Made by a program: the position numbers and the translations under genes. The notes under the pieces were generated by a model that saw only the letters and a program-made list of their open reading frames with translations, made no database searches and was not told the origin of the DNA. This document shows, piece after piece, positions 5,417-46,907 of a DNA stretch of 64,000 nucleotides (the stretch's first letter is position 1; every line of letters begins with the position of its first letter). The stretch lies in NCBI GenBank assembly GCA_025786725.1, contig JAHLTZ010000031.1, positions 186,001 to 250,000 on the forward strand, written 5' to 3'. This DNA is from Syncephalis fuscata S228. Taxonomy: Eukaryota > Fungi > Zoopagomycota.

Positions 5417-6100
5417 ATGAAGCTTTCTATTGCTGTCGTCTGCACCATCATCATGGTTTTTGTCGCCAGTACAGCCATGGCAGATGCTAATTCAGATTTA
5501 TTTCACCGTAGTATGTTTTAATTATAATAATCATCCAAGCTAAATATCTACTAATATATTTAATTGATACTAATAGAAGGTAAGCCACAATAAGAATTGT
5601 AAGTAGCATTATATGCTAATTAATTATACATTAAATACATGCTATTCATTGTGTGCATCAACAAATTGGTATTAATAGGCCGTAAGTGGTATTGTATATT
5701 GATTGACTATACACTAATTACATATTATTCATGTGTATGCCAACAATTTAACATCAGTAGTTCGTAAGTGGTATTGAACATTAATTAGCCATGTACTAAT
5801 CATATCATATGCATTGCATATAAATAATCGTAAGTGCAATTGCATACTAGCTAGTTATGCGCTAATCACATATTATGTATTATGTGCATAAATGATTTAA
5901 TAGGCTGTAGGTAGTATTGTATGTCAATTGGATATGCGACTAATTACTTGCTATTTAATATGTGTAACAACAATTTGATATTAATAGCCTGTAAGTAATG
6001 TTGTATATTAATTAGTTACGCACTAATTTCATGTTAATACTGTGTGTATCAATGAAACATTATATTAATAACAAATTTGAATTTAGTTAAATCTATTTAA
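5417..6100 (+). pseudogene. Degenerate/truncated member of the microexon secreted-peptide family
   Basis: Exon 1 (5417-5510) MKLSIAVVCTIIMVFVASTAMADANSDLFHR + phase-1 donor, homologous to the 21406 gene. Followed by AG|NNN|GTA units (AAG, GCC, TTC, GCT, CCT), two damaged units and no CTAATCCATAA terminal exon. Confidence 0.6.
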
Positions 6101-17052: not shown

Positions 17053-18712
17053 TAGCTTCAACAAATTAATTATAACACTGTATTGACATGAATAATATTA
17101 ACAAAAAACATTTATTTATTATTTAATTAATATATTTATTATTAAAAATTGGTACTACAACCAATGTGTTTTACAAATTGATAATAAAGACGAAAAGCTA
17201 TTATTATGATCACTATTATAAATGTCCCACAATTTGATATTTATGAGGGGTATTCGGCGTATCACGTCTCACTATCGCCGTTACAATTTTTCCCTTATGA
17301 ATCCATCCTGGTTTTATTACCATCCTGTGATGAATTGTTTTTATCTGACAACGTCGACCGAGGCGTAAATACTGCAAAGCGGTATTTATGTTCCAGCGAA
17401 TGTTCAGTCGCCTTGACCGGCGGCTGTCTTCCCGGTTGCGTGCAGCGGATGAGGGACGTCGTCGGCACCACACCTTGTTACAACCTAGACACGTCCAATA
17501 ACAAGTCTGAGGGCCCATTTTTATTTAGCCAATTATCAATTTTATTAGAAAAATAAACTGTTTTAAATTTCATTATAATAAATTCCGCTTTTTTAAATTT
17601 ATTTATTAATAAACTATTTTTATTTGCCCACACTTCATTTTTTGTAATAACGTTTACTACAGATTAAACACTCTTTAATAGCATGCTTTCTTTTATAGCT
17701 ATTTTATTAATAGTTGTATTTGTTCAATAAAGACGTTTATTTCAACATCAACTACTATTTCAATACTATTATTACTAATTTTACACAACATATTTTTGTA
17801 TTGTATTTTATGAGTTGCAGTTGGCACAAGTATATTGTTGCAAGTCTTTTAACAATAAAACACAGTTGGCATTGCTGTTAATATTGCTACAATTAAATAA
17901 ACTACATAAATAAGCAAATTTTAAATTAAAATTGCTGCATTTATTGTAATTAACTTTTTCCATCGATGCTTTTAGCCTTGTACCTTTATTATTCCACAAT
18001 ATTGTAAATACATAATACTATTACTCAAATAATAATAAATATGAATTTTATAATTTAATTCATTTAGTTTATATTTGAATTTAGACAATTGCAATTTTTA
18101 TTATAAAATGATTATTACACCATTTTATTACTGTTGTTACAACAATGTCATTATTTTTTATCGAATCAAAGGCAGATCAAGCTTTGTAATAAGAAATACT
18201 AGCATTTGTTGAGCCATTGCAATTGTTAATATATATTAAATAATCAAATATGTACTTAATGCTTTTACTTGTATGTTTTTTTATTTACATTTAAGAATGT
18301 AGTAATATCATTCGTAGTATATTTAGTAATAAATCTAATAGTATTATTACCAGAATCATATGGATAACCATTAAAATGCTTAATATTGCAATGAACAATT
18401 TTTACTAGCCTAGTCTTTTGCTTTCTGGTCATCAAAACAAACAGACATTTGTTATTGGAATTGTTTTTATGAAGACAGATAAACTGTAATCTTATTGAAT
18501 TACTATTTTTCCTTTAAAATTGCGATTGTTAACAAGCCTAAACTTATCAGCAGCAATATTCAATTCTTCAATACTGGTAAACATGGCTTTTTAAAATAGT
18601 TTGGTAGATATTTAAATATATCTTCTTAATAAAAGGAATTAATGACTTACTAATTTTATTTATGCTTATTTAAACCGTAATTTATTACGATAAATAACTT
18701 CAAAATTTCCCA

Positions 18713-19483
18713 TTTCATTTTGACTCCTACTTTTGAGTTTCCATAGCAAAATTTGTTTCAATTGAAATTGCACTGCTATACAAAATACAATTATATCACC
18801 TCTATCAAAATATTGTTAATAAATCGATTTAAATAAACAATATAACATACCATTTGACTATTTTGAAACATGTGATGTTGTTCATTGCTGTTGTTAACCA
18901 TATGTAGAAGAATTGATAAAATACTAATAAAAGCCATATGATTGCAATTCCATATTGTTTCGTAATTATTATTGTTGTTACTACGTACAGCATGGATTAT
19001 TGCGCCTGAATGGTCTCTTCTATTTTTCAATCTTCTACTGTTGTATTTGGGCATATTTGCCATGTAAGATACCCGTCTATGGTGACAAAAAGATAGGACA
19101 ACTAGCGTTCTGATGTTCACCATTCTCTTGAGCATTGTTGGTATCAACTTAATAGGTGCAGTTTATTTGCCAACCATTGATGAAGCAAATAACCTCCACC
19201 ATATGCAATAATGATAAGTTGAGTGTCTTCACCAGGAAGATCTTGTGGTGACAGTTGTAACCAGAAGATACAGCATGCCGTTGAGGTTACTTGAACAGGT
19301 GTTGATGTAAATAAGAGAAACAAAGACTAGGGATTGAATAATGTTTTTATTGATGTCCAAATACGCATGCTATTTATATTTTTATATTCAACATTATCAT
19401 GTAATATATTACTGAATAGAATAATAAAATGGTAATAAGAAATATGGTGAAATGAGTAAATAAAATGTAGGAGTCAAGGTAAA
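18713..19483 (-). mobile_element. Fanzor-relic TIR element (copy D), inside the left duplication arm
   Basis: Degenerate TIRs (ttttgactcctac / gtaggagtcaaggtaaa); inverted twin of 41360-42131. Confidence 0.65.
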
Positions 19484-21211
19484 ATGATTTGCTCATGTAA
19501 ATATTACGCGCTCAATTTGATGTTTTATTTTGTTTTAATATATAGCTATAAACTTTTATTAATGATCAATAAGCAAAAACAATATGTCTTTTTATTGTTG
19601 CAATAATGTATAATACTAGCTGCTTATTCTAATAAATAATTAGATTAAGTCTTGTAATAGTTGGCTTAATTGATGATCGTGTAAATGTGAGTATATAAGA
19701 AGTTACAATGTGATTGTAAATATTTATCGTACAAACAGCCAGTGTTATAAGCTATAGTGACAATAATAAGTTATTTAATTACTAAACTCGTTAATTCAAT
19801 TTTATTTACAACTCTTTGTTTTTATGCGTTATCTCGGTTTGACGTTGCTGCAGTTCTGGCCGCATCAGCAACAGCCAACTTTTGATAAATGCTGTCCAAC
19901 TTAGCATGCCCATAATGATTTGCTATAGGTCAAATTAGTAAGCCTTTGAGCTGCCAATTGTTTTACATTGGTTTTCGCTTTAATTTGTTCTTCTATGTTC
20001 CATCTTGCTTGACTTGTCAGGATTGGTTTCAAAAATGTAAGCAGCAGTTAGGCCTTGGATGATTACCAGTTGATATGCAACCTATTGAAATTATGCACTC
20101 GAAATTATTGATATTTGGCTAAAACTTTCTATTGTGTCCAATCTAGTGTCTGCATATTGCATTGTGTGTAATTTAGCCGATACAGCCTACTTTACAGACA
20201 AAAACGGACAACATCATTAGTTGGATGGAATGTTCTATTGTTAAAGATGTCGTGCTGAATTATGCCACAGACTGAGCAGCGTTTAAACCTTGAATAATTA
20301 GGGATTGGTGTGTAATCCATTACCACTATTCACTCAAAGTTGCTAATATTTGAATAGAATTGTTTGGTGTGCCTAGCCTCTCGTTTGTATATCGCATTGC
20401 ATAGAATCTAGACAATGCAATTTAGTTTACAGCTGAAACTGGTAAAAAATGACTTGTTGGAATGTTCCATTGCTCAAAATGCTGTGATGCATCATGCATA
20501 AACAGTACTTATTGTATAGTCGACTTCAAGTAACTTGGATTGGCCGCCATTTGAATGATGGTAGCTGCGCAACATGTAGCATGATATGCCTGGATGTGAT
20601 ACATTTGTGAATTCAAAGCAATGATTACTCCATAGCAATGGGCATAGTGTCGAATGAAATGCACGCATGTACCAATCAACACACTTTATAATTTAAAAAT
20701 TATGGCTGGCCTATGTATAGCAGTAAAAACCTGTATAAAAATACTAGTTTGATACATAAGCTTGTTTTTGCAACAATATTGTACATTGTTTGTATGTATG
20801 CAAATATTGGTGCCCGAGTCATTCAATGGAAGTGACAGCAAAGATATCATTATTGCTTTTACAAAATCAAACATTATATTTGTTTTTACCGAATAGTTAG
20901 ACCGTGTAACAAAAACCAGGTTAATATGTCTATTTTTATCCCATATGTACTGGATTGTGAACACCGTTACAGTACTCGTGCAAATAACTAACAGATTGGA
21001 GTAAAGACCAGGCAGGTTAAAATAAAGACCAATAGGTTAAAATCAATACTGAGTGAATTAAAATCAAGCCTAGAAAGCATCCTAGCACACATGAATCTAT
21101 TGTTACATGTGCACCTCAAACCACTATTTGGATTGCTTTATTGGTTCATATTACACATCAATGGTATATCTCGTATACTACAGTATACTAGCATCTTAGC
21201 ATAATCATAAG

Positions 21212-21366
21212 TATAAATAGCCCACAAAATATACACAACCAACTGCGATATCATCATCACACTCTACTTCTTATTAAACACACACTACTCTCCACTTTAT
21301 ACCGACCACACTCTACTTCTTGCTATACACGCACTACTCTCCATTCTATACCAACCACACTCTACT
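21212..21366 (+). promoter_or_regulatory. TATA box plus ~49-bp tandem duplication in the promoter/5'UTR of microexon gene A
   Basis: TATAAATA at 21212; cacactctact recurs at 21258, 21307 and 21356; mirrored at ~39520-39672. Confidence 0.5.
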
Positions 21367-21405
21367 ATTTCTTTTATTTGTTTGTCTTAACAAGTCAATA
21401 TCACC

Positions 21406-24400
21406 ATGAAGCTTTCCATTGCCGTCGTTTGCACCGTTGTTGTGGCTATTGTGGCTAGTACATCCATGGTTGATGCTAAACCGGCCTTAGTTCGCCGTGA
21501 TGGTATGTTACAATAACAATAAATATACCATAATATTTTGTTTACTAACAGTATTTCTAACTAATAATTATAATAGCCAGTAAGCTGTATTGTATACTAA
21601 ATGACTATACATTAACTATACTATTTATTGATTGTACCAATTATTTAATATTAATAGGGTGTAAGTTGTATGATATATTACTTGACTATACATTAACTAT
21701 ATGTCATATATTGTATCTATCAACAAATTAATATTAGATGACTGTAAGTTATATTGTATATTGGTTGATTACTCACTAATTGCATGCTATGCGCTATGTG
21801 TATCAACAACTTAATACCAATAGGCTGTAAGTGATATTGTATATTGATGACTTATAAATTAATCATATACCATGTATTATGTGTATCAACAATTTAATGC
21901 CATAGTGGGTAAGTTGTATTGTATATTAGCTGAGTATTAACTAATTATATATTATGTGTTGCATGTATCAATGACTTGATATTAGTGCAATGTAAGTTAT
22001 ATTATATATTAATTGCACACTAGCTAATTATATATTATGCGTTGTGTGTATCAATAACTTTATACTAATAGGCGGTAAGTCGTATTGTATGTTGCTTACT
22101 TATAAATTAATTATATATCATACACTATGTGCATTAATAACTTGATGGAATAGTTGGTAAGTAACATTGTATATTCACTGACTATGCACTAATTATATAT
22201 TTTGTACTGTGTGTGGGCAATTTAATACAATAGCGAGTGAGTTGTATCGTATATAAACCAATCACTCACTAATTACATATCATGCACTGTGTGTATCAAC
22301 GACTTAATATTAATAGAATGTAAGTGGTATTGTATATTAATTGGGCATTGGCTAATTATATGCTATTTAATGTGTAAATCAATAACTTAATATTAATAGG
22401 CAGTAAGTATTATTATGTACTAACTAATTGCTCGCTGATTATATTCATGTACTGTGTACATTAACAACTTAATATTAATAGATCGTAAGTGCTATTGTAT
22501 ATCATGTACTGTGTACATTAACAATTTAATATTAATAGAGCGTAAGTGATATTGTATATCCATGTACTGTGTGTATCAACGACTTAATATTAATAGAATG
22601 TAAGTGGTATTGTATATTAGTTGGCTGCATTAACTATGCTATTTACTAATTGTACTTATTTAATATTAATAGTCAGTAAGTGATATTGTATATTCTTTGA
22701 CTGTACATTAACTATGCTATTTACTAATGGTATTAATTATTTAATATTAATAGATCGTAAGTGATATTGTATATTCTTTGACTGTACATTAACTATGCTA
22801 TTCACTAATTGTACTTATTTAATATTGATAGCTGGTAAGTGATATTGTATATTCTTTGACTGTACATTAACTATGCTATTTACTAATGGTATTAATTATT
22901 TAATATTAATAGACCGTAAGTAATATTATGTATTAACTGGCTATACATTAACTATTTGTTTACTAATGGTATTAATTGTTTAATATTGATAGGGGGTAAG
23001 TAGTATTGTATATTCCTTAACTGTACATTAATTATTTAATATTAATAGCTGGTAAGTGATATTGTATATTCTTTGACTGTACGTTAAATATGCTATTTAC
23101 TAATGGTATTAATTATTTAATATTAATAGACCGTAAGTGATATTGTATATTCTTTGACTGTACATTAATTATGCTATTTGTTAATTGTACTTATTTAATA
23201 TTGATAGCTGGTAAGTGATATTGTATATTCCTTAACTGTACATTAATTATTTAATATTAATAGCTGGTAAGTGATATTGTATATTCTTTGACTGTACATT
23301 AAATATGCTATTTGTTAATTGTACTTATTTAATATTGATAGCTGGTAAGTGATATTGTATATTCTTTAACTGTACATTAACTATGCTATTTACTAATGTA
23401 TTATTATTTAATATTAATAGACCGTAAGTAATATTATGTATTAACTGGCTATACAATAACTATACTATTTATTGATTGTACAATTATTTAATATTAATAG
23501 AAAGTAAGTGGCATTGTATATTAACTGGCTATATATTAATTATGCTATTTACTGACTATACTAATTATTTAATATTAATAGGGTGTAAGTTATATTGTAT
23601 ATTGATTGCACACTGGCTAATTATATGTCATGCGCTGTGTATATCAATAACTTAATATTAATAGGGTGTAAGTTGTATTGTATATTAACCGATTATACAT
23701 TAACTATGCTATTTACTCATTTTACCTGTCATTTAACATTAATAGACCGTAAGTGGTATTGCATATTAACTGAATATATATATTAATTATGCTATTTACT
23801 GATTATACTAATTATTTAATATTAATAGCCTGTAAGTAGTATTGTATATCAATTGGCTATACATTAATTGCTATTTACTGATGGTACCAATTGTTTAATA
23901 TTAATAGGTGGTAAGTTGTATTGTATATTAACTATACATTAACTATAATATTTACTGATAATACCAATTATTTAATACAATAGTCCGTAAGTAGTATTTT
24001 ATATTAACTGACTATACATTAACTATGCTATTTACTGATTGTACTTATTATTTAATGTTAATAGGCCGTAAGTGATATTGTATATAGCTAACTATCTACT
24101 AATTATATATTATGTATTTTATGCATCAACAACTTAATATAATAGATTGTAAGTAGTATTGTATATTAATTGATTATATATTAATTACATTCTATTTACT
24201 ATATGTATCGACAAATTAATATTAATAGGTCGTAAGTTGTGTTGCGTATTAACCGACTATGCATTAATTATACACTATGTATTGTGTTCACCAACAAATT
24301 AATATTAATAGATTGTAAGTTGTTGTATACTAACTGGCTACTCACTAATCACATGCTATTTAATTTATTCATCAACAAATTAATATTAATAGATAGTAAG

Positions 24401-24724
24401 TTATTGTATACTAACTGGCTACTCACTAATCACATGCTATTTACTGTATCCATTAACAACTTAATATTAATAGAAGGTAAGTTGTATTGCATATCAATAG
24501 AACATGCGCTAATTTATACTATATACTGTATTCAACAACATCTTAATATCAATAGAATGTAAGTAGTATTGTGTATTAATTGATTACTTACTAATTACAT
24601 GTTATGCACCATGTGTACCAATAAATTAATACTAATAGGCCGTAAGTAGCATTTTATATTGATAACTTATACATTAACTATATGACATGTAATATATTTA
24701 TTTATAAATACAGCTAATCCATAA
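21406..24724 (+). CDS. Microexon gene A: secreted 6-Cys peptide, 42 exons (97-nt exon 1, 38 x 3-nt and 2 x 6-nt microexons, 11-nt terminal coding exon), 77 aa
   Basis: Spliced product MKLSIAVVCTVVVAIVASTSMVDAKPALVRRD-ARYDCLVQCVAKCNQQFNPDRADPAADQRWYPCVRHCHYKECPNP*. Every microexon is flanked by TAG and GTAAG/GTGAG; no internal stop. Confidence 0.85.
21503..24713 (+). repeat. Tandem array of ~55-85-nt intron units (consensus gtaagtNNtattgtatattaactgactatacattaactatgctatttactaat...aattatttaatattaatag + NNN)
   Basis: 41 related units with ~80-nt periodicity. Confidence 0.95.
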
Positions 24725-27076
24725 GCATAAGGACATCAGCATTGGTAGTGCAATCAACCACTATTCCAATACAATTTAGGTATATATTCGGTGAAAAGCA
24801 AGACCATTTGACAACTACGCCGTCCAGTCTATCTATATATCAAGTTTTGGCCAATGCTCCGGTTTATCCAGTCTTTAATCAATGGAATCATTATGTTACC
24901 AACATGTTTGCATCTAGTTGTTTCTATTCAACTGTGCAAGCTTATAGTAATAAACTTATGGTTCCATCTTAACTATATACGATCAAATTGCTAAATCTAT
25001 AATCATGTTCTATTTGCATTCAATAATTAACTATTAATTAAATAGTTAAAATAACAAAAGACATGTGCGATTATGTTGTATTAGCTATAAACATAGATTG
25101 GTATGGATAGTAGCAAAGCTATCAGCATCATATAGCCAAACAATATTATGCTGAAATTAAAATAAAAACGCTTTCTAATAAAACATGGCAATAAAGCATA
25201 CAATATTATAAACAAAATAAATAGACAAGTCAAATGTGTGAATAGTGATAGCAAAACTATACTGTATGCAATTAGCCAAGAGCAATAAACGAAATGGATC
25301 AAGATCTGCTAAAAGAATACAGTTAGCAATAAGCTTTTGGCTTTTATTAATATAGTTTCTACAATCTACAATATTAATGATATAGACAACATATAGTATA
25401 TGTATACAAGATAGATATGTGCAGTACAATAATAATGATAAATAAATAGCTTAATAACCAACGACACTCACCACCATTTCATCTTCAATAACACGAATAT
25501 TTAGTTTAAATGTGTGGCTATTATGGTTATTTAACTGCCAAATCACATTAAACAACCAATAGCGTGCTCAATATTGTGGAAAAAGTATCTTTATTTAGTT
25601 AATAAAAATATTATAAAATTTGATACAAATCAAGTGGTTTAAATGGCCCATCACAGCATCCTCTTAAGCTTTTTTCGCCATGTTCCACAACTCTTTTAAA
25701 TTAGAACATTGGAGCGACTACTGCGCCATTTAAAATGAACGTTACAAGTAGATTGTTCCAGTTTATCAATGACAAATGTCATGTTGACGGTTTTATTTTG
25801 CACATCTTCACTCTTGCTTGATACGCCAACTAATTAATTTAAGTTGATCAAAGCAATAACACTTTTATGTAATTCGGAAATATTTAATTGCTATATCTGA
25901 TATCTGGATGCTGTAAACCAATCTAATCTTATTTGTTGGTTAAATTCAAAATCTAAAAATATTTATTAATTCAATTATTTTTGTTTGCATTACACTTTAT
26001 TTATTTTAATAGTTGTTCCATTAGTAGTTTGTATTTATTCAATAAAAACGTTTGTTTCAGCATCAACTACTGTTTCAGCATTGTTACTGTTCTGATATTC
26101 CGGGCAGGGTCTTGTAAGGTGTGATCAAGAGATATACCATGTAATTGTATAGCCAGTTAAAGTCGCATGTGATTGATCGCAAGAATAATATACCTATCGG
26201 ATATTAGTACCGATTACTAGTAACAAATGCCTATTACGACAATATGACGTGTAGCTACTTGTTAGTTGTGAGCATATGAGCAGTCGCCTGAACTAATATG
26301 CTGCGCTAATGATCAAATACTACAAGGCATTCCAGTTTATTATTAGCTATGTTTACTATTAATGATAGCTTTATTCAATATCAATAAAAAAATAATCAAG
26401 CTTCTAGTCCAATGTTATTTCTACTTAGTGTTATACAAGCTATTCAGTTTATTATAGTTAAACTGTAGTAATTAATGACCAATAAGGAATAATTTATTAT
26501 AAAAGCAATACAACCAAACAACAAATTATATTCTGAGCGTTAAGGTAAGCGTTGATAAGCATTGGGAATTAACGTTATAGGATAGCGACAGGACAAGGTG
26601 TTGTTTGGTCATCTAAGTTGTGATTTCTAAAGCTAGAAGCGTAACACTGTTATTGCAACAATGTCATTAGTTTTAAATGAGTTTGGTACAGCTATATAAA
26701 TGTTAAGACGTTGATCATGGAAAATTAAACCGGATCAAATGCTATGTTGTGTGTTGTGTAGTAGATGTCATTACGTGACAAAAAGTTAATAACTAATGCA
26801 AATCACCATATTTGGTAATTGACATAAATAAATGCGTTATTGCTCTTAATAATTGAATATCTTAGTTTCTATTGTAATAGCTCAATGTTTATTTGAGCAT
26901 ATTATTAGCATTAATGTAATCGAATAAACCAAAATGAACTGTATTGCCATCCCGAATGTATTACTTTAGTGATTCAGGTGAATCAATGGAATACTACCCA
27001 CGATTAAAAACTGATGCAGTGATGCTACAACATCACCCACTTTTTTCTTTTTTAAAACATTGTAATTAAAGCTACA

Positions 27077-34614: not shown

Positions 34615-35141
34615 AATAAAATTAGTAAGTCATTAATTTCTTTTATTAAGAAGATATATCTAAATATCTACCAAACTATTTTAAAAAGCCATGTTTACCA
34701 GTATTGAAGAATGAATATTGCTGCTGATAGTTTAGGCTTGTTAACAATCGCAATTTTAAAGGAAAAATAGTAATTCAATAAGATTACAGTTTATCTGTCT
34801 TCATAAAACAATTCCAATAACAAATGTCTGTTTGTTTTGATGACCAGAAAGCAAAAGACTAGGCTAGTAAAAATTGTTCAATGCAATATTAAGCATTTTA
34901 ATGGTTATCCATATGATTTTGGTAATAATACTATTAGATTTATTACTAAATATACTACAAATGATATTACTACATTCTTAAATGTAAACCAAAAACATAC
35001 AAGTAAAAACATTAAGTACATATTTGGTTATTTAATATATATTAACAATTGCAATGGCTCAACAAATGCTAGTATTTCTTATTACAAAGCTTGATCTGCC
35101 TTTGATTCGATAAAAAATAATGACATTGTTGCAACAACAGT
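34615..35141 (+). repeat. ~527-bp segment directly repeated at 42186-42714 (inverted copy at ~18130-18660)
   Basis: aataaaattagtaagtcattaatt...atgacattgttgcaacaacagt occurs at both positions. Confidence 0.9.
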
Positions 35142-37054
35142 GTTGCGCTTCTAGTTTTAGAAATCGCAACTTAAATGACCAAACAACACCTTGTCCTGTC
35201 GCTATCCTATAACGTTAATTCCCAATGCTTATCAACGCTTACCTTAACGCTCAGAATATAATTTGTTGTTTGGTTGTATTGCTTTTATAATAAATTATTC
35301 CTTATTGGTCATTAATTACTACAGTTTAACTATAATAAACTGAATAGCTTGTATAACACTAAGTAGAAATAACATTGGACTAGAAGCTTGATTATTTTTT
35401 TATTGATATTGAATAAAGCTATCATTACATAGTAAACATAACTAATAATAGAACTGGAATGCCTTGTAGTATTTGATCATTAGCGCAGCATATTAGTTCA
35501 GGCGACTGCTCATATGCTCACAACTAACAAGTAGCTACACGTCATATTGTCGTAATAGGCATTTGTTACTAGTAATCGGTACTAATATCCGATAGGTATA
35601 TTATTCTTGTGACCAATCACATGCGACTTTAACTGACTATACAATTACATGGTATATCTCTTGATCACACCTTTACAAGACCCTGCCCGGAATATCAGAA
35701 CAGTAACAATGCTGAAACAGTAGTTGATGCTGAAACAAACGTTTTTATTGAATAAATACAAACTACTAATGGAACAACTATTAAAATAAATAAAGTGTAA
35801 TGCAAACAAAAATAATTGAATTAATAAATATTTTTAGATTTTGAATTTAACCAACAAATAAGATTAGATTGGTTTACAGCATCCAGATATCAGATATAGC
35901 AATTAAATATTCCGAATTACATAAAAGTGTTATTGCTTTGATCAACTTAAATTAATTAGTTGGTATCAAGCAAGAGTGAAGATGTGCAAAATAAAACCGT
36001 CAACATGACATTTGTCATTGATAAACTGGAACAATCTACTTGTAACGTTCATTTTAAATGCGCCGTAGTCGCTCCAATGTTCTAATTTAAAAGAGTTGTG
36101 GAACATGGCGAAAAAAGCTTAAGAGGATGCTGTGATGGGCCATTTAAACCACTTGATTTGTATCAAATCTTATGATATTTTTATTAACTAAATAAAGATA
36201 CTTTTTCCACAATATTGAGCACGCTATTGGTTGTTTAATGTGATTTGCAGTTAAATAACCATAATAGCCACACATTTAAACTAAATATTCGTGTTATTGA
36301 AGATGAAATTGGTGGTGAGTGTCGTTGGTTATTAAGCTATTTATTTATCATTATTATTGTACTGCACACATCTATCTTGTATACACATACTATATGTCGT
36401 CTATATCATTAATATTGTAAATTATAGAAACTATATTAATAAAAGCCAAAAGCTTATTGCTAGCTGTATTCTTTTAGCAGATCTTGATCCATTTCGTTTA
36501 TTGCTCTTGGTCATTGCATACAGTATAGTTTTGCTATCACCATTCACGTATCTAATTGCTTATTTATTTATTTATAATATCTATGCTTTATTACCATGTT
36601 TATTAGAAAGCGTTTTTATTTTAATTTTAGCATAATATTGTTTGGCTATATGACTGATAGCTTTGCTACTATCCATACCAATCTATGTTTATAGCTAATA
36701 CAACATAATCGCACATGTCTTTTGTATTTTAACTATTTGATTAATAGTTTCATTATTGAATAAAATAGAACATGATTATAGATTTAGCAATTTGATTGTA
36801 TATAGTTAAGATGGAACCATAAGTTTATTACTATAAGCTTGCACAGTTGAATAGAAACAACTAGATGCAAACATGTTGGTAACATAATGATTCCATTGAT
36901 TAAAGACTGGATAAACCGGAGCATTGGCCAAGACTTGATATATAAATAGACTGGACGGCGTAGTTGTCAAATGGTCTTGCTTTTCATCGAATATATACCT
37001 AAATTGTATTGGAATAGTGGCTTGATTGCACTACCAATGCTGATGTCCTTATGC

Positions 37055-39479
37055 TTATGGATTAGCTGTATTTATAAATAAATATATTACATGTCATATA
37101 GTTAATGTATAGATTAGCAATATAAAATATAACTTACCTTCTATTAGTATTAAGTTATTGATACACAAAATAAATAACATGTAATTAGTAAGTAACCAAT
37201 TAATATGAAATGCTACTTACGGCCTATTAGTATTAAGTTGTTAGTACACATGATGTATAACATGTAATTAGTAAGTAATCAATTAATACACAATACTACT
37301 TACATTCTATTGATATTAAGATGTTGTTGAATACAGTATATAGTATAAATTAGCGCATGTTCTATTGATATGCAATACAACTTACCTTCTATTAATATTA
37401 AGTTGTTAATGGATACAGTAAATAGCATGTGGTTAGGGAGTATCCAGCTAGTATAAAATATAACCTACTGTCTATTAATATTAAATTATTGATGAGCACA
37501 ATACATGGTATATAATTAATATGTATTCAGTTAGTACATAACACAACTTACTGCCTATTAATATTAATTTGTCGATACATATAGTAAATAGAATGTAATT
37601 AATATATAATCAATTAATACACGATACTACTTACAATCTATTATATTAAGTTGTTGATGCATAAAATACATAATATATAATTAGTAGATAGTTAGCTAAT
37701 ATACAATATCACTTACTGTCTATTATATCAAGTTAATTCATACAATGAATAGCATAGTTAATGTATAGTCAGTTAATATACAAAACCACTTACATTCTAT
37801 TAATATTAAATAGTTGGCACATCATTGAATAACAGCTAATATATAGTCAGTTATTTACAATATTACTTACCACCTATTAATATTACATAATTAGTATAAG
37901 CAGTAAATAACAGTTGTATAATCAGTTAATATACAAAACCACTTACAAACTATTAATATTAAATAGCATAGTTAATATATAGTCAGTTAATATACAATAT
38001 TACTTACTGACTATTAATATTAAATAAGTACAATTAGTAAATAGCATATTTAATGTATAGCCAGTTAATATACAATACCACTTACACCCTATTAATATTA
38101 AATAGTTGGTATAGTTATTAAATAGCATAGTTAATATATAGCCAGTTAATATACAATACCACTTACTAACTATTAATGTTAAATAGTTGATATAGTTATT
38201 AAATAGCATAGTTAATATATAGTTAATTAATATGCAATACAACTTACAGGCTATTAATATTAAATAGTTGGTACAATCGTTAAATAGCATAGTCAATATA
38301 TAGTAATTAATATACAATACCACTTACGACCTATTAATATTAAATAGTTGGCACAATCAGTAAATAGCATAGTTAATGTGTAGTCAGTTAATATACAATA
38401 TAACTTACGACCTATTAATATTAAATAATCGACACAGTCAGTAAATAGCGGTTAATATATAGTCGATGGATATACAATATCACTTACCGCCTATTAATAT
38501 TAAGTTATTGGTACACACAATACACGATATATAATTAGCCAATGCCTAATTAATATACAATACCACTTACAATTTTCTAATATTAAGTTGTTGATATACA
38601 CAGTGCATGATATGTAATTAGTGAGTGATTGGTTCATATACGATACAACTTACTTCTTTCTGTATTAAATTGCCCACACAGTACAAAATATATAATTAGT
38701 GCATAGTCAGTGAATATACAATATTACTTACTAACTATTCCATCAAGTTATTGATGCACATAGTGTATGGTATATAATTAATTTATAAGTAAGCAACATA
38801 CAATACGACTTACCGCCTATTAGTATAAAGTTATTGATACACACAGCGCATAATATATAATTAGTCAGTGTGCAATTAGTATACAGTATAACTTACATTG
38901 TTCTAATATTAAGCCATTGGTACATACAACACATAATATATAATTAGTTATAGTCATTTAATATACAATACAACTTACCCACTATGGCATCAAATTGTTG
39001 ATGCACATAATACATGATATATGATTAATTTATAAGTTAGCACATACAATATCACTTACAGCCTATTGGTATTAAGTTGTTGATACACATAGTCCATAGC
39101 ATGCAATTAATGAATAATCAACTAATATACAATATAACTTACAGTCATCTAATATTAAGTTGTTGATAGATACAGTATATGACATATAGTTAATGTATAG
39201 TCAAGTAATATATCATACAACTTACACCCTATTAATATTAAATAATTGGTACAATCAATAAATAGTATAGTTAATGTATAGTCATTTAGTATACAATACA
39301 GCTTACTGGCTATTATAATTATTAGTTAGAAATACTGTTAGTAAACAAAATATTATGAATATTTATTGTTATTGTAACATACCATCACGGCGAACTAAGG
39401 CCGGTTTAGCATCAACCATGGATGTACTAGCCACAATAGCCACAACAATGGTGCAAACAACGGCAATGGAAAGCTTCAT
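37055..39479 (-). CDS. Microexon gene B: secreted 6-Cys peptide, 30 exons (24 x 3-nt and 4 x 6-nt microexons), 67 aa
   Basis: Spliced product MKLSIAVVCTIVVAIVASTSMVDAKPALVRRD-ARYDCLEQCVKRKNCGRPFRFICEYNCNKECQANP*; units appear as CTTAC-NNN-CTA on the + strand. Confidence 0.85.
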
Positions 39480-41359
39480 GGTAATATTGACTTGTTAAGA
39501 CAAACAAATAAAAGAATAGTAGAGTGTGGTTGGTATAGAATGGAGAGTAGTGCGTGTATAGCAAGAAGTAGAGTGTGGTCGGTATAAAGTGGAGAGTAGT
39601 GTGTGTTTAATAAGAAGTAGAGTGTGATGATAATATCGCAGTTGGTTGTGTATATTTTGTGGGCTATTTATACTTATGATTATGCTGAGATGCTAGTATA
39701 CTGTAGTATACGAGATATACCATTGATGTGTAATATGAACCAATAAAGCAATCCAAATAGTGGTTTGAGATGCATATGTACAATAGATTATAATGTGGTA
39801 GGATGCTTTCTAGGCTTGATTTTAACCTGTCCGGTCTTTATTTTAACCTGCCGGTCTTTACTCCAATCTGTTAGTTATTTGCGCGAGTACTGTAACGGTG
39901 TTCACAATCCAGTACATATGGGATAAAAATAGACATATTAACCTGGTTTTTGTTACATGGTCTAACTATTGGTAAAAACAATATAATGTTTGATTTTGTA
40001 AAAGCAATAATGATATCTTTGCTGTCACTTCCATTGAATGACTCGGGCCCAATATTGCATACATACAAAATGTACAAATTGCCAAAAACAAGCTTATGTA
40101 TCAAACTAGTATTTTTATACAGGTTTTTACTGCTATACATAGGCCAGCCATAATTTTTAAATTATAAAGTGTGTTGATTGGTACATGCGTGCATTTCATT
40201 CGACACTATGCCCATTGCTATGGAGTAATCATTGCTTTGAATTCACAAATGTATTACATCCAGGCATATCATGCTACATGTTGCGCAGCTACCATCATTC
40301 AAATGGCGGCCAATCCAAGTTACTTGAAGCGACTATACAATAAGTACTGTTTATGCATGATGCATCACAGCATTTTGAGCAATGGAACATTCCAACAAGT
40401 CATTTTTTACCAGTTTCAGCTGTAAACTAAATTGCATTGTTAGATTCTATGCAATGCGATATACAAACGAGAGGCTAGGCACACCAAACAATTCTATTCA
40501 AATATTAGCAACTTTGAGTGAATAGTGGTAATGGATTACACACCAATCCCTAATTATTCAAGGTTTAAACGCTGCTCAGTCTGTGGCATAATTCAGCACG
40601 ACATCTTTAACAATAGAACATTCCATCCAACTAATGATGTTGTCCGTTTTTGTCTGTAAAGTAGGCTGTATCGGCTAAATTACACACAATGCAATATGCA
40701 GACACTAGATTGGACACAATAGAAAGTTTTAGCCAAATATCAATAATTTCGAGTGCATAATTTCAATAGGTTGCATATCAACTGGTAATCATCCAAGGCC
40801 TAACTGCTGCTTACATTTTTGAAACCAATCCTGACAAGTCAAGCAAGATGGAATATAGAAGAACAAATTAAAGCGAAACCAATGGAAAACAATGGCAGCT
40901 CAAAGGCTTACTAATTTGACCTATAGCAAATCATTATGGGCATGCTAAGTTGGACAGCATTTATCAAAAGTTGGCTGTTGCTGATGCGGCCAGAACTGCA
41001 GCAACGTCAAACCGAGATAACGCATAAAAACAAGAGTGTAAATAAATTGAATTAACGAGTTTAGTAATTAAATAACTTATTATTGTCACTATAGCTTATA
41101 ACACTGGCTGTTTGTACGATAAATATTTACAATCACATTGTAACTTCTTATATACTCACATTTACACGATCATCAATTAAGCCAACTATTACAAGACTTA
41201 ATCTAATTATTTATTAGATAAGCAGCTAACATTATACATTATTGCAACAATAAAAAGACATATTGTTTTGTTTATTGGCCATTAATAAAAGTTGTATAAC
41301 TATATTAAAATAAAATAAAACATCAAATTGAGCGCGTAATATTTACATGATCAAGCCAT

Positions 41360-42131
41360 CTTTACCTTGACTCCTACATTTTTATTTACTCATTTCACCA
41401 TATTTCTTATTACCATTTTATTATTCTATTCAGTAATATATTACATGATAATGTTGAATATAAAAATATAAATAGCATGCGTATTTGGACATCAATAAAA
41501 ACATTATTCAATCCCTAGTCTTTGTTTCTCTTATTTTACATCAACACCTGTTCAAGTAACCTCAACGGCATGCTGTATCTTCTGGCTACAACTGTCACCA
41601 CAAGGTCTTCCTGGTGAAGACACTCAACCTATCATTATTGCATATGGTGGAGGTTATTTGCTTCATCAATGGTCGGCAAATAAACTGTACCTATTAAGTT
41701 GATACCAACAATGCTCAAGAGAATGGTGAACATCAGAACGCTAGCTGTCCTATCTTTTTGTCACCATAGACGGGTATCTTACATGGCAAATATGCCCAAA
41801 TACAACAGTAGAAGATTGGAAAATAGAAGAGACCATTCAGGCGCAATAATCCATGCTGTACGTAGTAACAACAATAATAATACGAAACAATATGGAATTG
41901 CAATATATGGCTTTTATTAGTATTTTATCAACCTTTCTACATATGGTCAACAACAGCAATGAACAACATCAGATGTTTCAAAATAGCCAAATAGTATGTT
42001 ACATTGTTTATTTGAATCGATTTATTAACAATATTTTGATAAAAGGTGATATAATTGTATTTTGTATAGCAGTGCAACTTCAATTGAAACAAATTTTGCT
42101 ATGGAAATCAAAAAGTAGGAGTCAAAATGAA
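41360..42131 (+). mobile_element. Fanzor-relic TIR element (copy E), longest ORF remnant
   Basis: With frameshifts reads QPIIIAYGGG../FASSMVGK*TVPIKLIPTMLKRM../TIDGYLTWQICP/KYNSRRLENRRDHSGAIIHAVR../TIWNCN, matching the RuvC-II/Zn-finger/RuvC-III layout. Confidence 0.7.
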
Positions 42132-44565
42132 ATGGGAAATTTTGATGTTATTTATCGTAATAAATTACGGTTTCAAATAAGCATAAATAAAATTAGTAAG
42201 TCATTAATTCCTTTTATTAAGAAGATATATCTAAATATCTACCAAACTATTTTAAAAAGCCATGTTTACCAGTATTAAAGAACTGAATATTGCCGCTGAT
42301 GAGTTTAGGCTTGTTAACGATTGCAATTTTAAAGGAAAAATAGCAATTCAATAAGATTACAGTTTATCTGTCTTCATAAAGACAATTCAAATAACAAATG
42401 TCTGTTTGTTTTGATGGCCAGAAAGCAAAAGACTAGGCTAGTAAAAATTGTTCAATGCAATATTAAGCATTTTAATGGTTATCCATATGATTTGGTAATA
42501 ATACTATTAGATTTATTACTAAATATACTACAAATGATATTACTACATTCTTAAATGTAAACCAAAAACATACAAGTAAAAACATTAAGTACATATTTGG
42601 TTATTTAATATATATTAACAATTGCAATAGCTCAACAAATGCTAGTATTTCTTATTACAAAGCTTGATCTGCCTTTGATTTGATAAAAAATAATGACATT
42701 GTTGCAACAACAGTAATAAAATGGTGTAGCTTTGACCAAGTAACAAAGGGGAAAAGAAGTAGTAGTAGCTTAATCAAATGTTTTAATATTAATTTAATAA
42801 ATTAGTAGTATCAAATAAATTAACTTGTAGCAATAGTTCAAATAATCATATTTATAACATAAATTGCAATTGTCTAGATTCTAATATAAACTAAATGAAT
42901 TAAATTATAAAATTTATATATATTATTATTTAAGTAATAGTATTATGTATTTACAATATTGTTGAATAATAAAGGTACAAGGCTAAAAATCTGATGAAAA
43001 AGTTAATTACAATAAATGCAGCAATTTTAATTTAAAAGTTGTTTATTTATGTAGTTTATTTAATTGTAGCAATATTAACAGCAATGCCAACTGTGTTTTA
43101 TTTGTTAAAAGACTTGCAACAATATACTTGTGCCAATGCGACTCATAAAATACAATACAAAAATATGTTGTGTAAAACTAGTAATAATAGTATTGAAACA
43201 GTAGTTGATGTTAAAATAAACGGCTTTATTGAACAAATACAACTATTAATAAAATAACTGTGAAAAGAAAGCATGTATTAAAGAGTGTTTAATCTGTAGT
43301 AAACGTCATTACAAAAAATGAAGTGTGGGCAAATAAAAAATAAATTTATTTTAAATTTATTAACAAAAATTAATATTTAACATTATTAACACAATAAATC
43401 TACTAACAAATATTACAGCTATAAAAAAGCTTAACAATACGCACATTTTAATAAAAACATCATTCGTTCATACTCATCTATTTTCTCTACTATCACTTAA
43501 TCTAAGTTTTTATTTGAATGTTATCACTAAATTTTTATGAATTCCAAATTTTATATTAAAACAATTTAAATTATTAATTTCTATTGAGCCAAGTAGCTGG
43601 TATAAAAGTTCATATTTATGTTGACACAGATTAAAGAATTATAGATGTTTAATAAATGGAAAATAAAATAATGAAGCGATATTGCATAAAATAGTTGTGT
43701 CATTTATTTTACTGAGTGATAAAAAATCAACGGCGAGATTTGGATCGGGAATTCATAAAGTGCTGCTTTTCGCTTGTACCACTTTGTTCCGTCGTATGCA
43801 TCACACGTCTATTGATAGTTAAGACGAGATGATGATGTGGCCATTTGCCTTATTAGGAAGCTGTTGTGGCTTCACACACGTGTCCACCTCAGCTTCAATA
43901 TACACCTTTATTTTACGAACTGCTATCAAACTATAGATATTTATTTATAAATACTCAGTTATTATTAGTTATAAACAGAATGATAAAGCGTGAAATCAAA
44001 ATAAAAAACTAAAACTTTAAACTAAAGTGCGCACAATAATTAACAAGTACAAACCTCAATACAGAAGCCAGCCAAAGAAGCAATGCAGTTGGCTTGTACA
44101 AGTCATTTCAAGCAGCGGTCAGTCGTGAGATTTTTGTAACCATTGTACGCGTGTATAGGGGAGTGGATAAAGCATTAGAAACATCTATGGCAGTAAATAC
44201 CAATAGGAAAGTCGAGACTGATGTTCAGGAGTGTGGTGTAAAGCACGTCATCAAAATTGCCCAATCAGTGTAATTTATGTTTGAAAGATTACCACGACTA
44301 CTGTATCTGTTGTCAGATCTAGTTTCATTGTTAGATGAGTACAGATAATTGGTCGGAACCATGAATATTTAGCACGTCATTTCCTAAAGTGCAGATAGGC
44401 AACATCAGTATTATCTATTGCTTGTAGTGGTTTGCCAGCACAAGCTAAGCTATTTAAGCGCGCTGATTTACCAGTATTCCTACTAATTCTTCAGACTTGC
44501 GCTTTTCTGCTACTTACTAGCTGATTACTCTGTAGCTTTCGCTCTATCCTATTTTATTGTTTCCT

Positions 44566-46907
44566 ATGGCTCTTGCGACAATCTTGGATTTCCGCGCATT
44601 GGCGCAAACCGCGAACTCAAGCGTTTAGTAGAAGGATATTGGTCCGGCAAGGTCGATGAAGCTACGCTACTTGGCAAAAGCCATGAAATACGCGAGACTC
44701 ATTGGGGGATTCAGAAAAGCAAAGGCCTGCATCACGTAACGGTTGGCGACTTTTCGCTATATGACCATGTTTTAGACACAAGCGTTACTTTAGGCGTAAT
44801 TCCAGAGCGGTATCAACATTTGGCACCAGGATTGCAAACTTACTTTGCTATGGCTCGTGGTCTACAAAAGCCAGCCAGCTCTGATGGCGCCGTGGCCGCC
44901 GTTGATGTCCCAGCCATGGAAATGAAGAAATGGTTTGATACCAACTACCATTATATCGTTCCTGAGCTATCCAGCCATCAAGCATTCAAGTTGGCCATTG
45001 AACCAAAGGTGGTCTCTGAATTCAAGGAGGCTAGCAAGTTGGGCATATCCGCTCGCCCAGTGATCATTGGACCGATCTCCTATTTATTATTGAGCAAGCC
45101 AGGCCGTGATGTAGCAAATGCAACCAACTTTAATCGATTTGCTTTATTGCCTGACCTTATTGCCGTATATATTCAGTTGCTGCAGCAACTTGCTGATGCT
45201 GGTGCCACATGGATTCAAGTAGATGAGCCGTTCCTTGCTTTGGATCTACCTACTGGTGCCCGTGAACACTTTGTTTCCGCGTACACGCAGTTTGCTGAAG
45301 CAATTCGCCGTACCTCGCTTAAATTGCTACTCACCACTTACTTTGCTCGCATTCCTGAGCAAAACATTAGCTTGATTGGTGAACTGCCTGTCCAAGGCAT
45401 TCACGTCGATTTGGTTAGAGCTCCAGAGCAGCTCGATGCTGTGCTATCGCACCTTCGTTCGGAGCAAGTAATTTCTCTGGGATTGGTTGATGGGCGTAAT
45501 GTCTGGCGAACAAATCTACGCAAGGCTCTTGCTTTGGCGCAACACGCCATTAATCATTTGGCAGGCGATAAAAGTCGCGTATTTATTGGACCATCCAGTT
45601 CTTTGTTGCATTCGCCACACACCTTTGCCAATGAGTCCGATATTGACAAGGAGATTATTGTCTGGCTGGCTGGCGCTACCGAGAAGTTAGATGAAATTGC
45701 AGTGCTGACCAAGGCAATTAACGATGGTGAAGAGTCTGTTCAGAGTGAATTAAAAGCCAACGATGAAATCTCTAATGCTCGTCGCACTTCTACTCGTATT
45801 CACAAGCCAGAAGTACGTAAGCGATTGGATGCCGTTTCCCCTGATCAGCTACGCCGCCGCTCTCCATTTGCAACTCGCCGCACAGAGCAGAACTCCAAGC
45901 TGCAGCTGCCACGTTTCCCTACTACCACTGTTGGATCCTTCCCCCAAACTAACGAGGTACGTCTGGCCCGTTCCCGTCTACGTAAACAAGAATGGACTCA
46001 AGATCAATACAATCAATTTATCCGCGAGGAGATTGAGCGCGCTGTACGTTTCCAAGAGCGTGTCGGCCTTGACATGTTGGTGCATGGCGAGAGTGAACGT
46101 AACGATATGGTTGAATATTTTGGTGAACAATTAGACGGCTATGTATTCACAAAGTTTGGCTGGGTCTCTTCCTATGGCACTCGCTGTGTCAAGCCTCCTA
46201 TTATTTACGGAGATATCCAACGATTGCGCCCAATGACCGTTGATATCATTCGCTATGCTCAATCACTTACAAGCCGTCCACTTAAAGGCATGCTTACAGG
46301 TCCTATCACATGTCTGCAATGGTCGTTTGTGCGAGACGACCAGCCACGTCGCGATACTGCCTTCCAATTGGCATTGGCCATCCGAGATGAGGTGACTGAT
46401 TTAGAAGCTGCCGGTGTACCCGCAGTGCAGATTGATGAGCCGGCCATTCGAGAAGGTTTGCCACTTCACCGTGCCGACTGGGAGGCATACCTTCAATGGT
46501 CCGTCGATGCCTTCCTTCTTTCCAGTACTGGTGTTGCCGACAACACTCAAATACACACGCACATGTGCTACTCTGACTTCAACGACATTTTCCCTGCTAT
46601 CCAGCGCCTGGATGCCGATGTAATTACTATTGAAAACAGTCGTTCGGACTTAAAGCTACTTGAAGCATTTGATCGTTACTCATACACAAACGAAATTGGT
46701 CCAGGTATCTACGATATTCACTCGCCACGAGTACCATCAGTAGATGAGATGCACGAACGAGCTGTAGCACTCCTCCGCTATCTACCGGCCGATCTACTCT
46801 GGATTAATCCAGACTGTGGTCTCAAAACGCGTGGTTGGGCTGAAGTAGAAGCAGCTTTGACCAATTTAGTGACTGTAGCACGTAAATTGCGCGCCGAATC
46901 ATCTTAA
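44566..46907 (+). CDS. MET6: Cobalamin-independent methionine synthase, intronless (apparent 1-nt deletion near 44580)
   Basis: LGFPRIGANRELK, DFSLYDHVLD, EMKKWFDTNYHY, PTTTVGSFPQT, HGESERNDMVEYFGE, HTHMCYS, NPDCGLKTR. Confidence 0.97.

Follow-up and report, generated by a model that had tools for sequence, protein, structure and literature searches.

Gene B, on the minus strand of the 64,000-nucleotide stretch of Syncephalis fuscata DNA analysed here (the window), is very likely an intact protein-coding member of an S. fuscata family of secreted prepro-peptides that has at least 300 members. Microexons make up 28 of its 30 exons (24 of 3 nt and 4 of 6 nt, every one a multiple of 3); they spell out the mature peptide one residue at a time, no codon of the array lying within a single exon. 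Gene B lies in one arm of an inverted segmental duplication, the other arm of which carries its paralog, gene A. The features of both, in positions of the window, are:

18116..26674, plus strand: arm of the inverted segmental duplication with gene A (blastn against 42728-35113)
21406..24724, plus strand: paralog A, with exon 1 and terminal exon as in B and 40 microexons
35113..42728, minus strand: arm of the inverted segmental duplication with gene B (blastn against the gene A arm)
39480..39734, minus strand: upstream region and 5'UTR of gene B, including a 49-bp tandem repeat
39518-39626, minus strand: the 49-bp tandem repeat (TRF)
39383..39479, minus strand: exon 1, 97 nt, with start codon, hydrophobic leader, pro-region ending in RR and first mature residue
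39310..39382, minus strand: intron 1, 73 nt, GTATGT...AATAG
37138..39309, minus strand: microexon array, 28 exons, each preceding a GT-AG intron (58-80 nt) from a single repeat family
37957..38515, minus strand: youngest unit block of the array, encoding the Cys3-Cys4 loop (TRF period 81, 7 copies, 84% matches)
37066..37137, minus strand: last intron, 72 nt, GTAAGT...TACAG
37055..37065, minus strand: coding part of the terminal exon, 11 nt, which completes one codon and adds two more and a TAA stop
36561..37047, minus strand: 3'UTR and 3' flank common to the family, matching intronless paralogs in their 3' flanks at 82-90% identity

We searched for microexons with an unbiased pattern scan (AG, then 3, 6 or 9 nt, then GTRRG). 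Between 39309 and 37138 of the minus strand, the scan returned the same 28 triplets and hexamers that had been listed in the initial annotation, in the same order and base for base. Exon 1 ends in phase 1, with GTATGT as the donor next to it. Every one of the 29 introns is of the GT-AG type; their donors comprise 26 GTAAGT and one each of GTATGT, GTAAGC and GTAGGT, and their acceptors 23 AATAG, 3 ATTAG, 2 TACAG and 1 CATAG. The array introns have a mean identity of 74% within gene B and are similarly close to introns of four other family loci (L007, L024, L030 and L031), while the neighbouring units 11-16 are 82-91% identical, as against about 70-77% elsewhere in the array. Joining the coding sequence in silico gives 204 nt, whose translation is a 67-residue precursor with a leader, an RR site and then C-x3-C-x5-C-x7-C-x3-C-x3-C, reproducing the peptide and the six-Cys framework originally proposed. 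When the order of the exons is shuffled, only 0.27% of the orders for gene B, and 0.015% for gene A, give no premature stop together with at least six Cys.

The same features are found in the further family members that we collected, in which the six-Cys framework recurs, Cys is enriched and stops are avoided. A 158-nt query made of the gene B 5'UTR and exon 1 yielded 40 scored places at 88-100% identity, among 224 candidates in the genome, and a protein search with P0123, an NCBI-annotated protein, gave 319 candidates; we put the family at 300 genes at least. At the 40 loci, 585 of the 587 array exons have a length of 3 or 6 nt, although anything from 1 to 12 nt had been allowed. Read in the frame of exon 1, 21 non-redundant arrays contain 2 stops in 511 codons, compared with 27.8±4.0 (minimum 15, 2000 shuffles) when the exon order is shuffled and 49 in frame +2. 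These arrays contain 84 Cys codons, against 36.9±4.4 after shuffling, a 2.3-fold enrichment. Six Cys in the layout of gene B occur also in 8 other microexon genes and in 12 distinct intronless ORFs. The layout of the family consists of three close Cys (mostly C-x2/3-C-x3-C), a loop, and then C-x3..5-C-x3..5-C, which gene B fits. The claim that these arrays are translated is thus well supported by exon lengths, stop avoidance, Cys enrichment and the existence of intronless paralogs.

These intronless paralogs, of which P0123 is one (other examples are among loci L039-L058), resemble gene B over about 560 nt in front of the ATG, through the leader and along 240-490 nt of the 3' flank. They also have its promoter region, 5'UTR, RR site and six-Cys framework but, unlike gene B, encode their mature peptide, C-x2/3-C-x3-C...C-x3-C-x3-C, in a single ORF without interruption. 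The 5' region yields a tree in which a single, well-supported clade takes in 28 of the 31 sampled microexon genes, the intronless genes showing greater diversity. That the intronless paralogs are simple retrocopies is unlikely, because the similarity reaches those ~560 nt upstream of the ATG. They may have arisen by cDNA-mediated intron loss at the locus; it is also possible that the whole microexon clade derives from an intronless six-Cys gene through intron gain at nearly every codon. Since their flanks are the same, the intronless paralogs provide a way to study whether introns were lost or were gained en masse. A Pfam search with five paralogs matched no family, and the ESM Atlas search gave no usable match. 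When a profile of the intronless paralogs was run against 1.84 billion representatives it retrieved 15 proteins, all 15 with the leader of this fungus.

Gene A also encodes six Cys, in the framework C-x3-C-x3-C-x19-C-x3-C-x4-C. It had been described as having a nearly identical exon 1 with one V/I change, an identical terminal exon, near-identical flanks and an array of different length, and we find this description to be accurate: exon 1 differs at 2 of 97 nt (one synonymous, one V/I), the terminal exon is the same in A and B and also in a third copy, B', the flanks differ at 102 of 5176 positions (2.0%), and the arrays have 40 and 28 microexons. As had been claimed, none of the six Cys codons is lost between A and B; each lies across an exon junction, and that of Cys5 shows the reported synonymous change (TGT in A, TGC in B, the junction following the T). 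We then aligned the orthologous units and compared their exon and intron rates. Exon bases diverge more than introns or flanks: in intron-orthologous units, 11 of 70 exon bases differ (15.7%), against 65 of 1393 intron bases (4.7%, p=6e-4) and against the flanks (p=2e-7). From a reading of the exon lists, all of the exon changes in orthologous units alter the residue except that at Cys5, and an acceptor shifted by exactly 3 nt accounts for each of the two 6-nt exons in which A and B differ. A pair of sequences gives no formal dN/dS; the comparison of gene B with A and B', its two closest copies, shows that the microexon bases do not evolve neutrally. With introns interleaved codon by codon as a local neutral reference, selection on single residues becomes unusually measurable in A, B and B'. 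The retention of the six Cys between A and B, and the recurrence of their framework in the family and in the intronless ORFs, support the proposed purifying selection on the Cys scaffold.

The excess of exon changes might instead reflect recombination-linked mutation, or ectopic conversion from family members, and not diversifying selection. Intron divergence between A and B also climbs across the array, being 0-3% at its ends and 6-17% around the rebuilt centre. Intron 1 of gene B is 1.4% diverged from its counterpart in A, and the last intron 8.3%. The array introns as a whole are more diverged than the flanks (4.7% versus 2.0%), and the centre of A has been replaced or expanded through unit turnover. 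However, when only the units with the greatest local divergence are taken, the 3 bases of each exon differ about 5 times more often than the ~78 intron bases adjoining them in the same unit (11/30 versus 47/699, p=5e-6), a non-orthologous unit acting as donor would have brought 15-30% intron divergence with it, and six of six Cys codons escaped change. We therefore regard mutation or conversion as an unlikely source of the excess, though one to be kept in mind, and favour selection on the encoded residues.

The third copy allows the change to be placed. B' encodes a protein identical to that of B. Their coding sequences differ at 2 of 204 positions, both synonymous, with 1 of 97 nt in exon 1 and, at Cys3, only a synonymous difference. 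The intron interiors differ at 60 of 1960 positions (3.1%) and the splice signals at 1 of 261, all 58 splice sites being retained save for one position. Coding positions and splice signals taken together are more conserved than intron interiors (p=0.0017); for coding positions alone the difference is not significant (p=0.12). By their downstream flanks A pairs with B (2.0%), and B' stands outside the pair (about 8-9%); in the region 39480..39734 the three copies show 3 differences each in ~255 nt. ARAGORN found no tRNA in the insert of B'. Since A and B are sisters by their flank, yet B and B' have identical proteins, the peptide change is most simply placed, from these sequences, on the A lineage and not on both. 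B thus looks like the conserved form and A like the fast-changing one, and B and B' probably retain the older peptide. The diversifying change in the loops that had been proposed for the pair is borne out by the exon excess over introns and flanks, but not as a change spread over both copies.

It could be argued that the gene type is real and that B itself is a silent or redundant duplicate, intact merely through its youth. A and B do lie within a recent inverted duplication of 2% divergence, and decayed members with in-frame stops exist in the family (L009, L015 and L036). Moreover, the RNA data, which consist of one small run (X1) of uncertain type available as contigs, contain the B-private base at 36987 in none of the contigs that cover it. 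As contigs lose rare variants, however, the absence of this allele is weak evidence. Against silence, the proteins of B and B' have stayed identical although their intron interiors have diverged by 3.1% and their downstream flanks by about 9%, their splice sites have been kept at all but that one position, and the coding changes are synonymous only. We consider a silent B improbable, and an intact coding gene the better account of these data.

At the family level RNA-contig depth is high, with a sum of about 1e5 for 36897-37090 (terminal exon and proximal 3'UTR), but it may stem largely from the intronless paralogs, since they share these UTRs with gene B. For the same reason a contrast of depth between UTR and array is not clean as evidence for gene B, the other marker bases of which are common to paralogs. 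In RNA contigs from paralogs, stretches of 12 to 21 nt made up of joined triplets lie between array-type introns, and in one of these contigs the first four triplets are the first four microexons of L011 and of no other among the 40 loci. These contigs bear on the idea that the array is removed whole or mostly skipped, with the microexons acting as decoys or recursive splice sites and the product reduced to leader, pro-region and three residues. Such skipping would be feasible, in that the microexons are all symmetric, so that any subset can be skipped in frame, and exon 1 joined to the terminal exon reaches the identical stop; nor did the contigs of run X1 include a B-specific spliced piece. 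But in sequence kept out of the mRNA, stop avoidance, Cys enrichment and the six-Cys framework would lapse, and the joined triplets of the paralogs are present in RNA, which together make skipping of the array very improbable. That the array is a non-coding, intron-derived minisatellite with an open frame by chance, or an assembly artefact, is close to refuted: TRF does read it as an 81-83-bp tandem repeat, and NCBI annotation does mis-model such genes (five of the six models that we found with the family leader are without a six-Cys mature part), but the exon-length, stop, Cys and order-shuffle statistics, the three diverged copies in differing contexts and orientations, and the intronless paralogs with the same framework all stand against it, while the duplication arms, differing by 2% and many indels, are neither a collapsed nor a duplicated assembly.

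In the layout of gene B an ordinary first exon supplies the constant leader and the pro-region ending in RR, and the variable mature peptide is assembled from the 28 exons of 3 or 6 nt. The splice signals lie wholly in the introns, with GTAAGT at the 5' end and AATAG at the 3' end, and the exon bases are therefore free to code. Since it is implausible that two spliceosomes would fit 3 nt from one another, the introns are presumably removed singly, by intron definition. Uninterrupted runs of 28-40 exons of 3 nt, in which an exon-borne signal is impossible, probe the limits of the spliceosome and raise the question of the order in which adjacent introns are removed. In evolution the array behaves as a minisatellite in which one unit gained or lost is one residue added or removed, and a 3-nt shift of an acceptor adds one residue as well. 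Following the recent inverted duplication, A has remodelled its central loop, with about 10 residues altered and all six Cys kept.

We put forward, only tentatively, that the layout of one codon per exon is a device for evolvability, by which the locus explores, and perhaps expresses by variable splicing, loop variants on a six-Cys scaffold. With each residue in a repeat unit of its own, unequal crossing-over would insert or delete single residues, and any subset of units could be skipped without breaking the frame. If so, A, B and B' would show such a change underway, with A having gained 12 net units and about 10 residue changes, within the time represented by a flank divergence of 2%, and B unchanged. 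The trio is in any case a compact natural experiment, with one copy conserved and another rapidly rebuilt.

The gene B precursor has a hydrophobic leader and a pro-region closed by a dibasic site immediately ahead of the mature part, as in Kex2-type prepro-peptides. Exon 1 closes with VRR in B, A, B' and most of the aligned family members. The leader is predicted to be removed and the pro-region to be cut after RR by a Kex2-type protease, and the resulting product of 35-36 residues would fold as a helical hairpin stapled by three disulfides. In an AlphaFold2 model of the intronless paralog L048 (mean pLDDT 71), helices at 37-49 and 53-64 span the mature part. Its best match in the PDB, a weak one (Z 3.1, rmsd 2.8 Å over 32 residues), is the scorpion Wasabi receptor toxin 6OFA, residues 1-32 of which correspond to model residues 32-65, covering the whole mature part. 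Foldseek of the paralog model against the PDB gave nothing at E up to 0.001, thionins appearing at E about 8. This model, itself of moderate confidence, is the basis on which the helical-hairpin fold is predicted for the peptide of gene B. Paired C-x3-C motifs, on two helices that are predicted to run antiparallel, recall the disulfide-stapled helical hairpins (CS-alpha/alpha), which include 6OFA, the kappa-KTx type, the plant thionin helical hairpin and the alpha-hairpinins. Gene B has C-x3-C at the start of its mature part and C-x3-C-x3-C at its end, and the family has six Cys where the hairpins have four; the likeness is a weak one, taken from the model of a paralog and not of B, and no function follows from it. 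The peptide is predicted to act outside the cell, plausibly on a host fungus or on competitors.

[quoted passage not shown] 2012, Fungal Biol 116:261; PMC4986451, PMC3689799, PMC10197012), with alternative splicing of the microexons also reported. They resemble gene B in being a fungal family with runs of 3-bp exons between short introns, presented as a diversification device, and differ in coding for large, intracellular, NLR-like receptors in an ascomycete. Gene B, in a zoopagomycete, has instead the whole mature part of a secreted peptide written codon-wise, and its product, of 67 residues with a secretion leader, is not a NACHT-ANK protein. The gene B family differs further in the constant 1-1 phase of its microexons, in its size of at least 300 places and in having intronless paralogs.

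The microexon genes (MEGs) of Schistosoma have exons of 6-36 nt, not 3-6 nt, and introns that do not form a tandem repeat family. They are animal genes, and gene B is fungal. In other respects they are alike, as MEGs encode secreted small proteins, with a signal peptide in a normal first exon, symmetric central microexons and a normal last exon, and constitute a lineage-specific, fast-evolving family (PMC5825161). We found no sequence relation of gene B to the platyhelminth MEGs, the profile of intronless paralogs having matched only proteins with the leader of this family. Venom-peptide superfamilies of the conotoxin type combine a conserved signal and pro-region with a hypervariable mature peptide on a fixed Cys framework. 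They evolve by gene duplication followed by accelerated change, and the mature toxin is encoded in an ordinary exon. In gene B the mature part is split codon by codon, and the resemblance is an analogy that implies no homology.

Standard annotation misses the genes of this microexon family. Syncephalis fuscata, to whose MetE protein the MetE encoded in the window is 95% identical, is a fungus that parasitises fungi. The family is likely the largest class of secreted peptides of this mycoparasite, and at the family level a very highly represented one, and it is almost absent from its proteome because the NCBI models miss the six-Cys mature parts. At least two of the five models without such a part appear to run into intron sequence.

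Gene B is organised on the minus strand as a first exon, an array of microexons and a short terminal coding segment:

39479-39383, minus strand: exon 1, 97 nt, with the ATG start at 39479 and a GTATGT donor after it
39309-37138, minus strand: microexon array, 28 matches to a scan for AG, 3, 6 or 9 nt, and GTRRG
37137-37066, minus strand: last intron; the remaining 11 coding bases (37065-37055) close with the TAA stop

The scan returned the same triplets and hexamers, in the same order, as the initial annotation, whose description was correct at every point checked. The microexons comprise 24 of 3 nt and 4 of 6 nt, all 29 introns are GT-AG (58-80 nt long, with 26 GTAAGT donors and 23 AATAG acceptors), and Tandem Repeats Finder reads the array DNA as an 81-83-bp repeat. 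Exon 1 ends one base into a codon, so that each array codon is divided by an exon junction. The 204-nt coding sequence assembled in silico predicts a 67-residue precursor: a hydrophobic leader, a pro-region that closes with a dibasic site (RR) right at the 3' end of exon 1, and a mature part whose cysteines follow the framework C-x3-C-x5-C-x7-C-x3-C-x3-C. This type of microexon gene is real, and remarkable. Immediately 5' of gene B (39518-39626) and of its inverted paralog, gene A (21258-21366), the conserved promoter-proximal region contains a 49-bp tandem repeat (2.2 copies, 88% matches).

In the S. fuscata genome the leader exon has between 224 and 319 candidate sites, and the family sample retrieved comprises 38 array loci plus another 20 loci. 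With array exons of 1-12 nt permitted, an intron walker returned 538 3-nt exons and 47 6-nt exons; only 2 exons fell outside these two lengths. For stop and Cys statistics we used 21 non-redundant arrays and shuffled their exon order 2000 times. The frame set by exon 1 contains 2 stops in 511 codons, both in decayed-looking copies, against 27.8±4.0 (minimum 15) in the shuffled arrays, while frame +2 contains 49. Cys codons are in excess in these arrays, with 84 observed against 36.9±4.4 after shuffling. For gene B alone, an open frame with six Cys arises in 0.27% of shuffled exon orders. In two instances a 6-nt exon in one of A and B corresponds to a 3-nt exon in the other, the acceptor being shifted by exactly 3 nt. 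Among variant donors, GCAAGT follows the first microexon at the same position in two genes (L008 and L010), which indicates a GC-AG intron, and GTAAAG occurs in one unit of a third (L011). A third member of the family in the window, on the plus strand at 5417-5990, is more divergent and probably decayed: its exon 1 is leader-like, its pro-region is altered and lacks RR, and among its roughly six microexon-like units is one (TAGTTC) that would place a stop in frame.

The strongest independent support for coding, and an unexpected one, comes from intronless paralogs: P0123, an S. fuscata protein annotated at NCBI, and some 25 further sites encode the family leader and a six-Cys peptide in one uninterrupted ORF. 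Those in our sample are as follows:

L039-L058 (e.g. G000:C240:2569-2775, C308:180381-180587, C345:42395-42601): intronless paralogs with the microexon-gene promoter region, leader, RR and 3' flank

The similarity of these genes to gene B extends over ~560 nt upstream and over 240-490 nt of the 3' flank, and their Cys frameworks are those obtained by joining microexons; C-x2-C-x3-C-x10-C-x4-C-x3-C, for example, is found both in the microexon gene L030 and in the intronless L058. Their mature ORF sometimes has eight Cys rather than six. Together with the scarcity of in-frame stops and the Cys excess, the matching ORFs argue, at the level of sequence, that the arrays are translated, as had been proposed. 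A tree of the 5' region groups 28 of 31 sampled microexon genes in a single supported clade; A, B and a third close copy, B', lie together inside it, and the intronless genes are more diverse. The intronless paralogs could be either ancestors or products of cDNA-mediated intron loss.

A profile of the intronless paralogs, searched against 1.84 billion representatives, matched only 15 proteins, all with the family leader and with varied mature parts, so the leader cassette is lineage-specific and reused. It is joined, with the pro-region, to histidine/lysine-rich helical repeats, proline-rich tails and other Cys patterns in P0129-P0136, and seems to serve a wider superfamily of secreted peptides. 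Five NCBI models (P0121, P0122, P0124, P0125 and P0126) have the leader without the six-Cys mature part, and at least P0124 and P0125 run on into an apparent translated intron; microexon genes appear to be systematically mis-annotated.

Gene A (21406-24724, plus strand) has the first and last exons of gene B, 40 microexons and the framework C-x3-C-x3-C-x19-C-x3-C-x4-C. The two lie in an inverted segmental duplication with arms at 18116-26674 (A) and 42728-35113 (B). Divergence between the arms beyond the genes themselves is 2.0%, with numerous small indels in addition, and an assembly artefact is thereby rejected. Orthologous units, recognised by their introns, comprise units 0-10 on the 5' side and a further seven on the 3' side, the array middle having turned over. 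Within them 11 of 70 exon bases differ, against 65 of 1393 intron bases (p=6e-4) and 102 of 5176 flanking bases (p=2e-7), and in the locally most diverged units the contrast is 11/30 against 47/699 (p=5e-6). On reading the exon lists, every one of these exon changes alters the residue save that at Cys5, T|GT in A and T|GC in B, which is synonymous.

B' (L001), on the same contig outside the window, repeats the 28 microexons of gene B except for a single synonymous change, in Cys3. B and B' show 60 differences over 1960 positions of intron interior, 2 over 204 coding positions (each of them synonymous) and 1 over 261 splice-signal positions (p=0.0017 for coding and signals against interiors, 0.12 for coding alone). 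The downstream flank pairs A with B as sisters (2.0%) and places B' farther away (~8-9%), yet B and B' share their protein. On the simplest reading of these comparisons, the older peptide persists in B, and A changed fast after duplication. The selection inferred in the initial annotation is supported, with an added polarity, B being the conserved copy and A the fast-changing one. Conversion between B and B' may instead account for their common protein. Recombination-linked mutation may have altered gene A. The central loop of gene A contains very recent unit duplicates; the youngest units of gene B (37957-38515) encode the Cys3-Cys4 loop. One intron of B' carries a 416-bp insertion (reverse-complement orientation ~2033-2449, immediately after the unit's GTAAGTGATATT.TATATTAT), in which ARAGORN found no tRNA. 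Inserts in L001, L002 and L021, three different genes, begin at one common intron-unit position, suggesting a small mobile element with its target in the repeat.

Expression was approached with the contigs of a single small run of matching species label, presumed to be RNA. Summed contig depth on 36800-39700 is ~2.6e5 at the 5'UTR and leader start, 0-70 across most of the array and 1-1.6e5 over the terminal exon and 3'UTR, a profile that looks like RNA. Most of these contigs are paralogs, and since the UTRs are common to intronless paralogs this contrast is no proof of array splicing. In two contigs, 12-21 nt of triplets that are not intron sequence adjoin array-type introns, and the first four triplets of one of these contigs match microexons 1-4 of L011, which have a genomic spacing of ~80 nt; the two contigs are suggestive at family level, short of proof. 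Because the base private to gene B at 36987 is absent from all contigs of the run and its other marker bases are common to paralogs, the expression evidence is the family's rather than gene B's own.

No Pfam family was found in the paralogs. AlphaFold2 models the mature part of the paralog L048 as two helices (mean pLDDT 71); its best structural match, to a helical-hairpin toxin from scorpion, is weak (Z 3.1; 32 residues superposed at rmsd 2.8 Å), and the resemblance to thionins is also weak (Foldseek E ~8). We infer that the product is secreted and folds as a helical hairpin with three stapling disulfides. S. fuscata is a zoopagomycete that parasitises other fungi, and the peptide could plausibly act as an effector or antimicrobial peptide.

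The literature searched showed no link between Syncephalis and microexons. The micro-exon genes of Schistosoma likewise encode secreted products with symmetric microexons; their exons are larger, and the search with the intronless-paralog profile gave no sequence relation to them. The nearest precedent is the nank family of Tuber melanosporum, described as having tens of codon-sized (3-bp) microexons and alternative splicing (PMC4986451, PMC3689799, PMC10197012). Gene B differs in that its whole mature peptide lies in 3-nt exons, its introns are one tandem-repeat family, and intronless paralogs exist beside the microexon genes. Elsewhere in the window, a cobalamin-independent methionine synthase gene (44187-46907, plus strand; 95% identity to a Syncephalis fuscata protein) has an apparent ~300-nt intron after codon 16.
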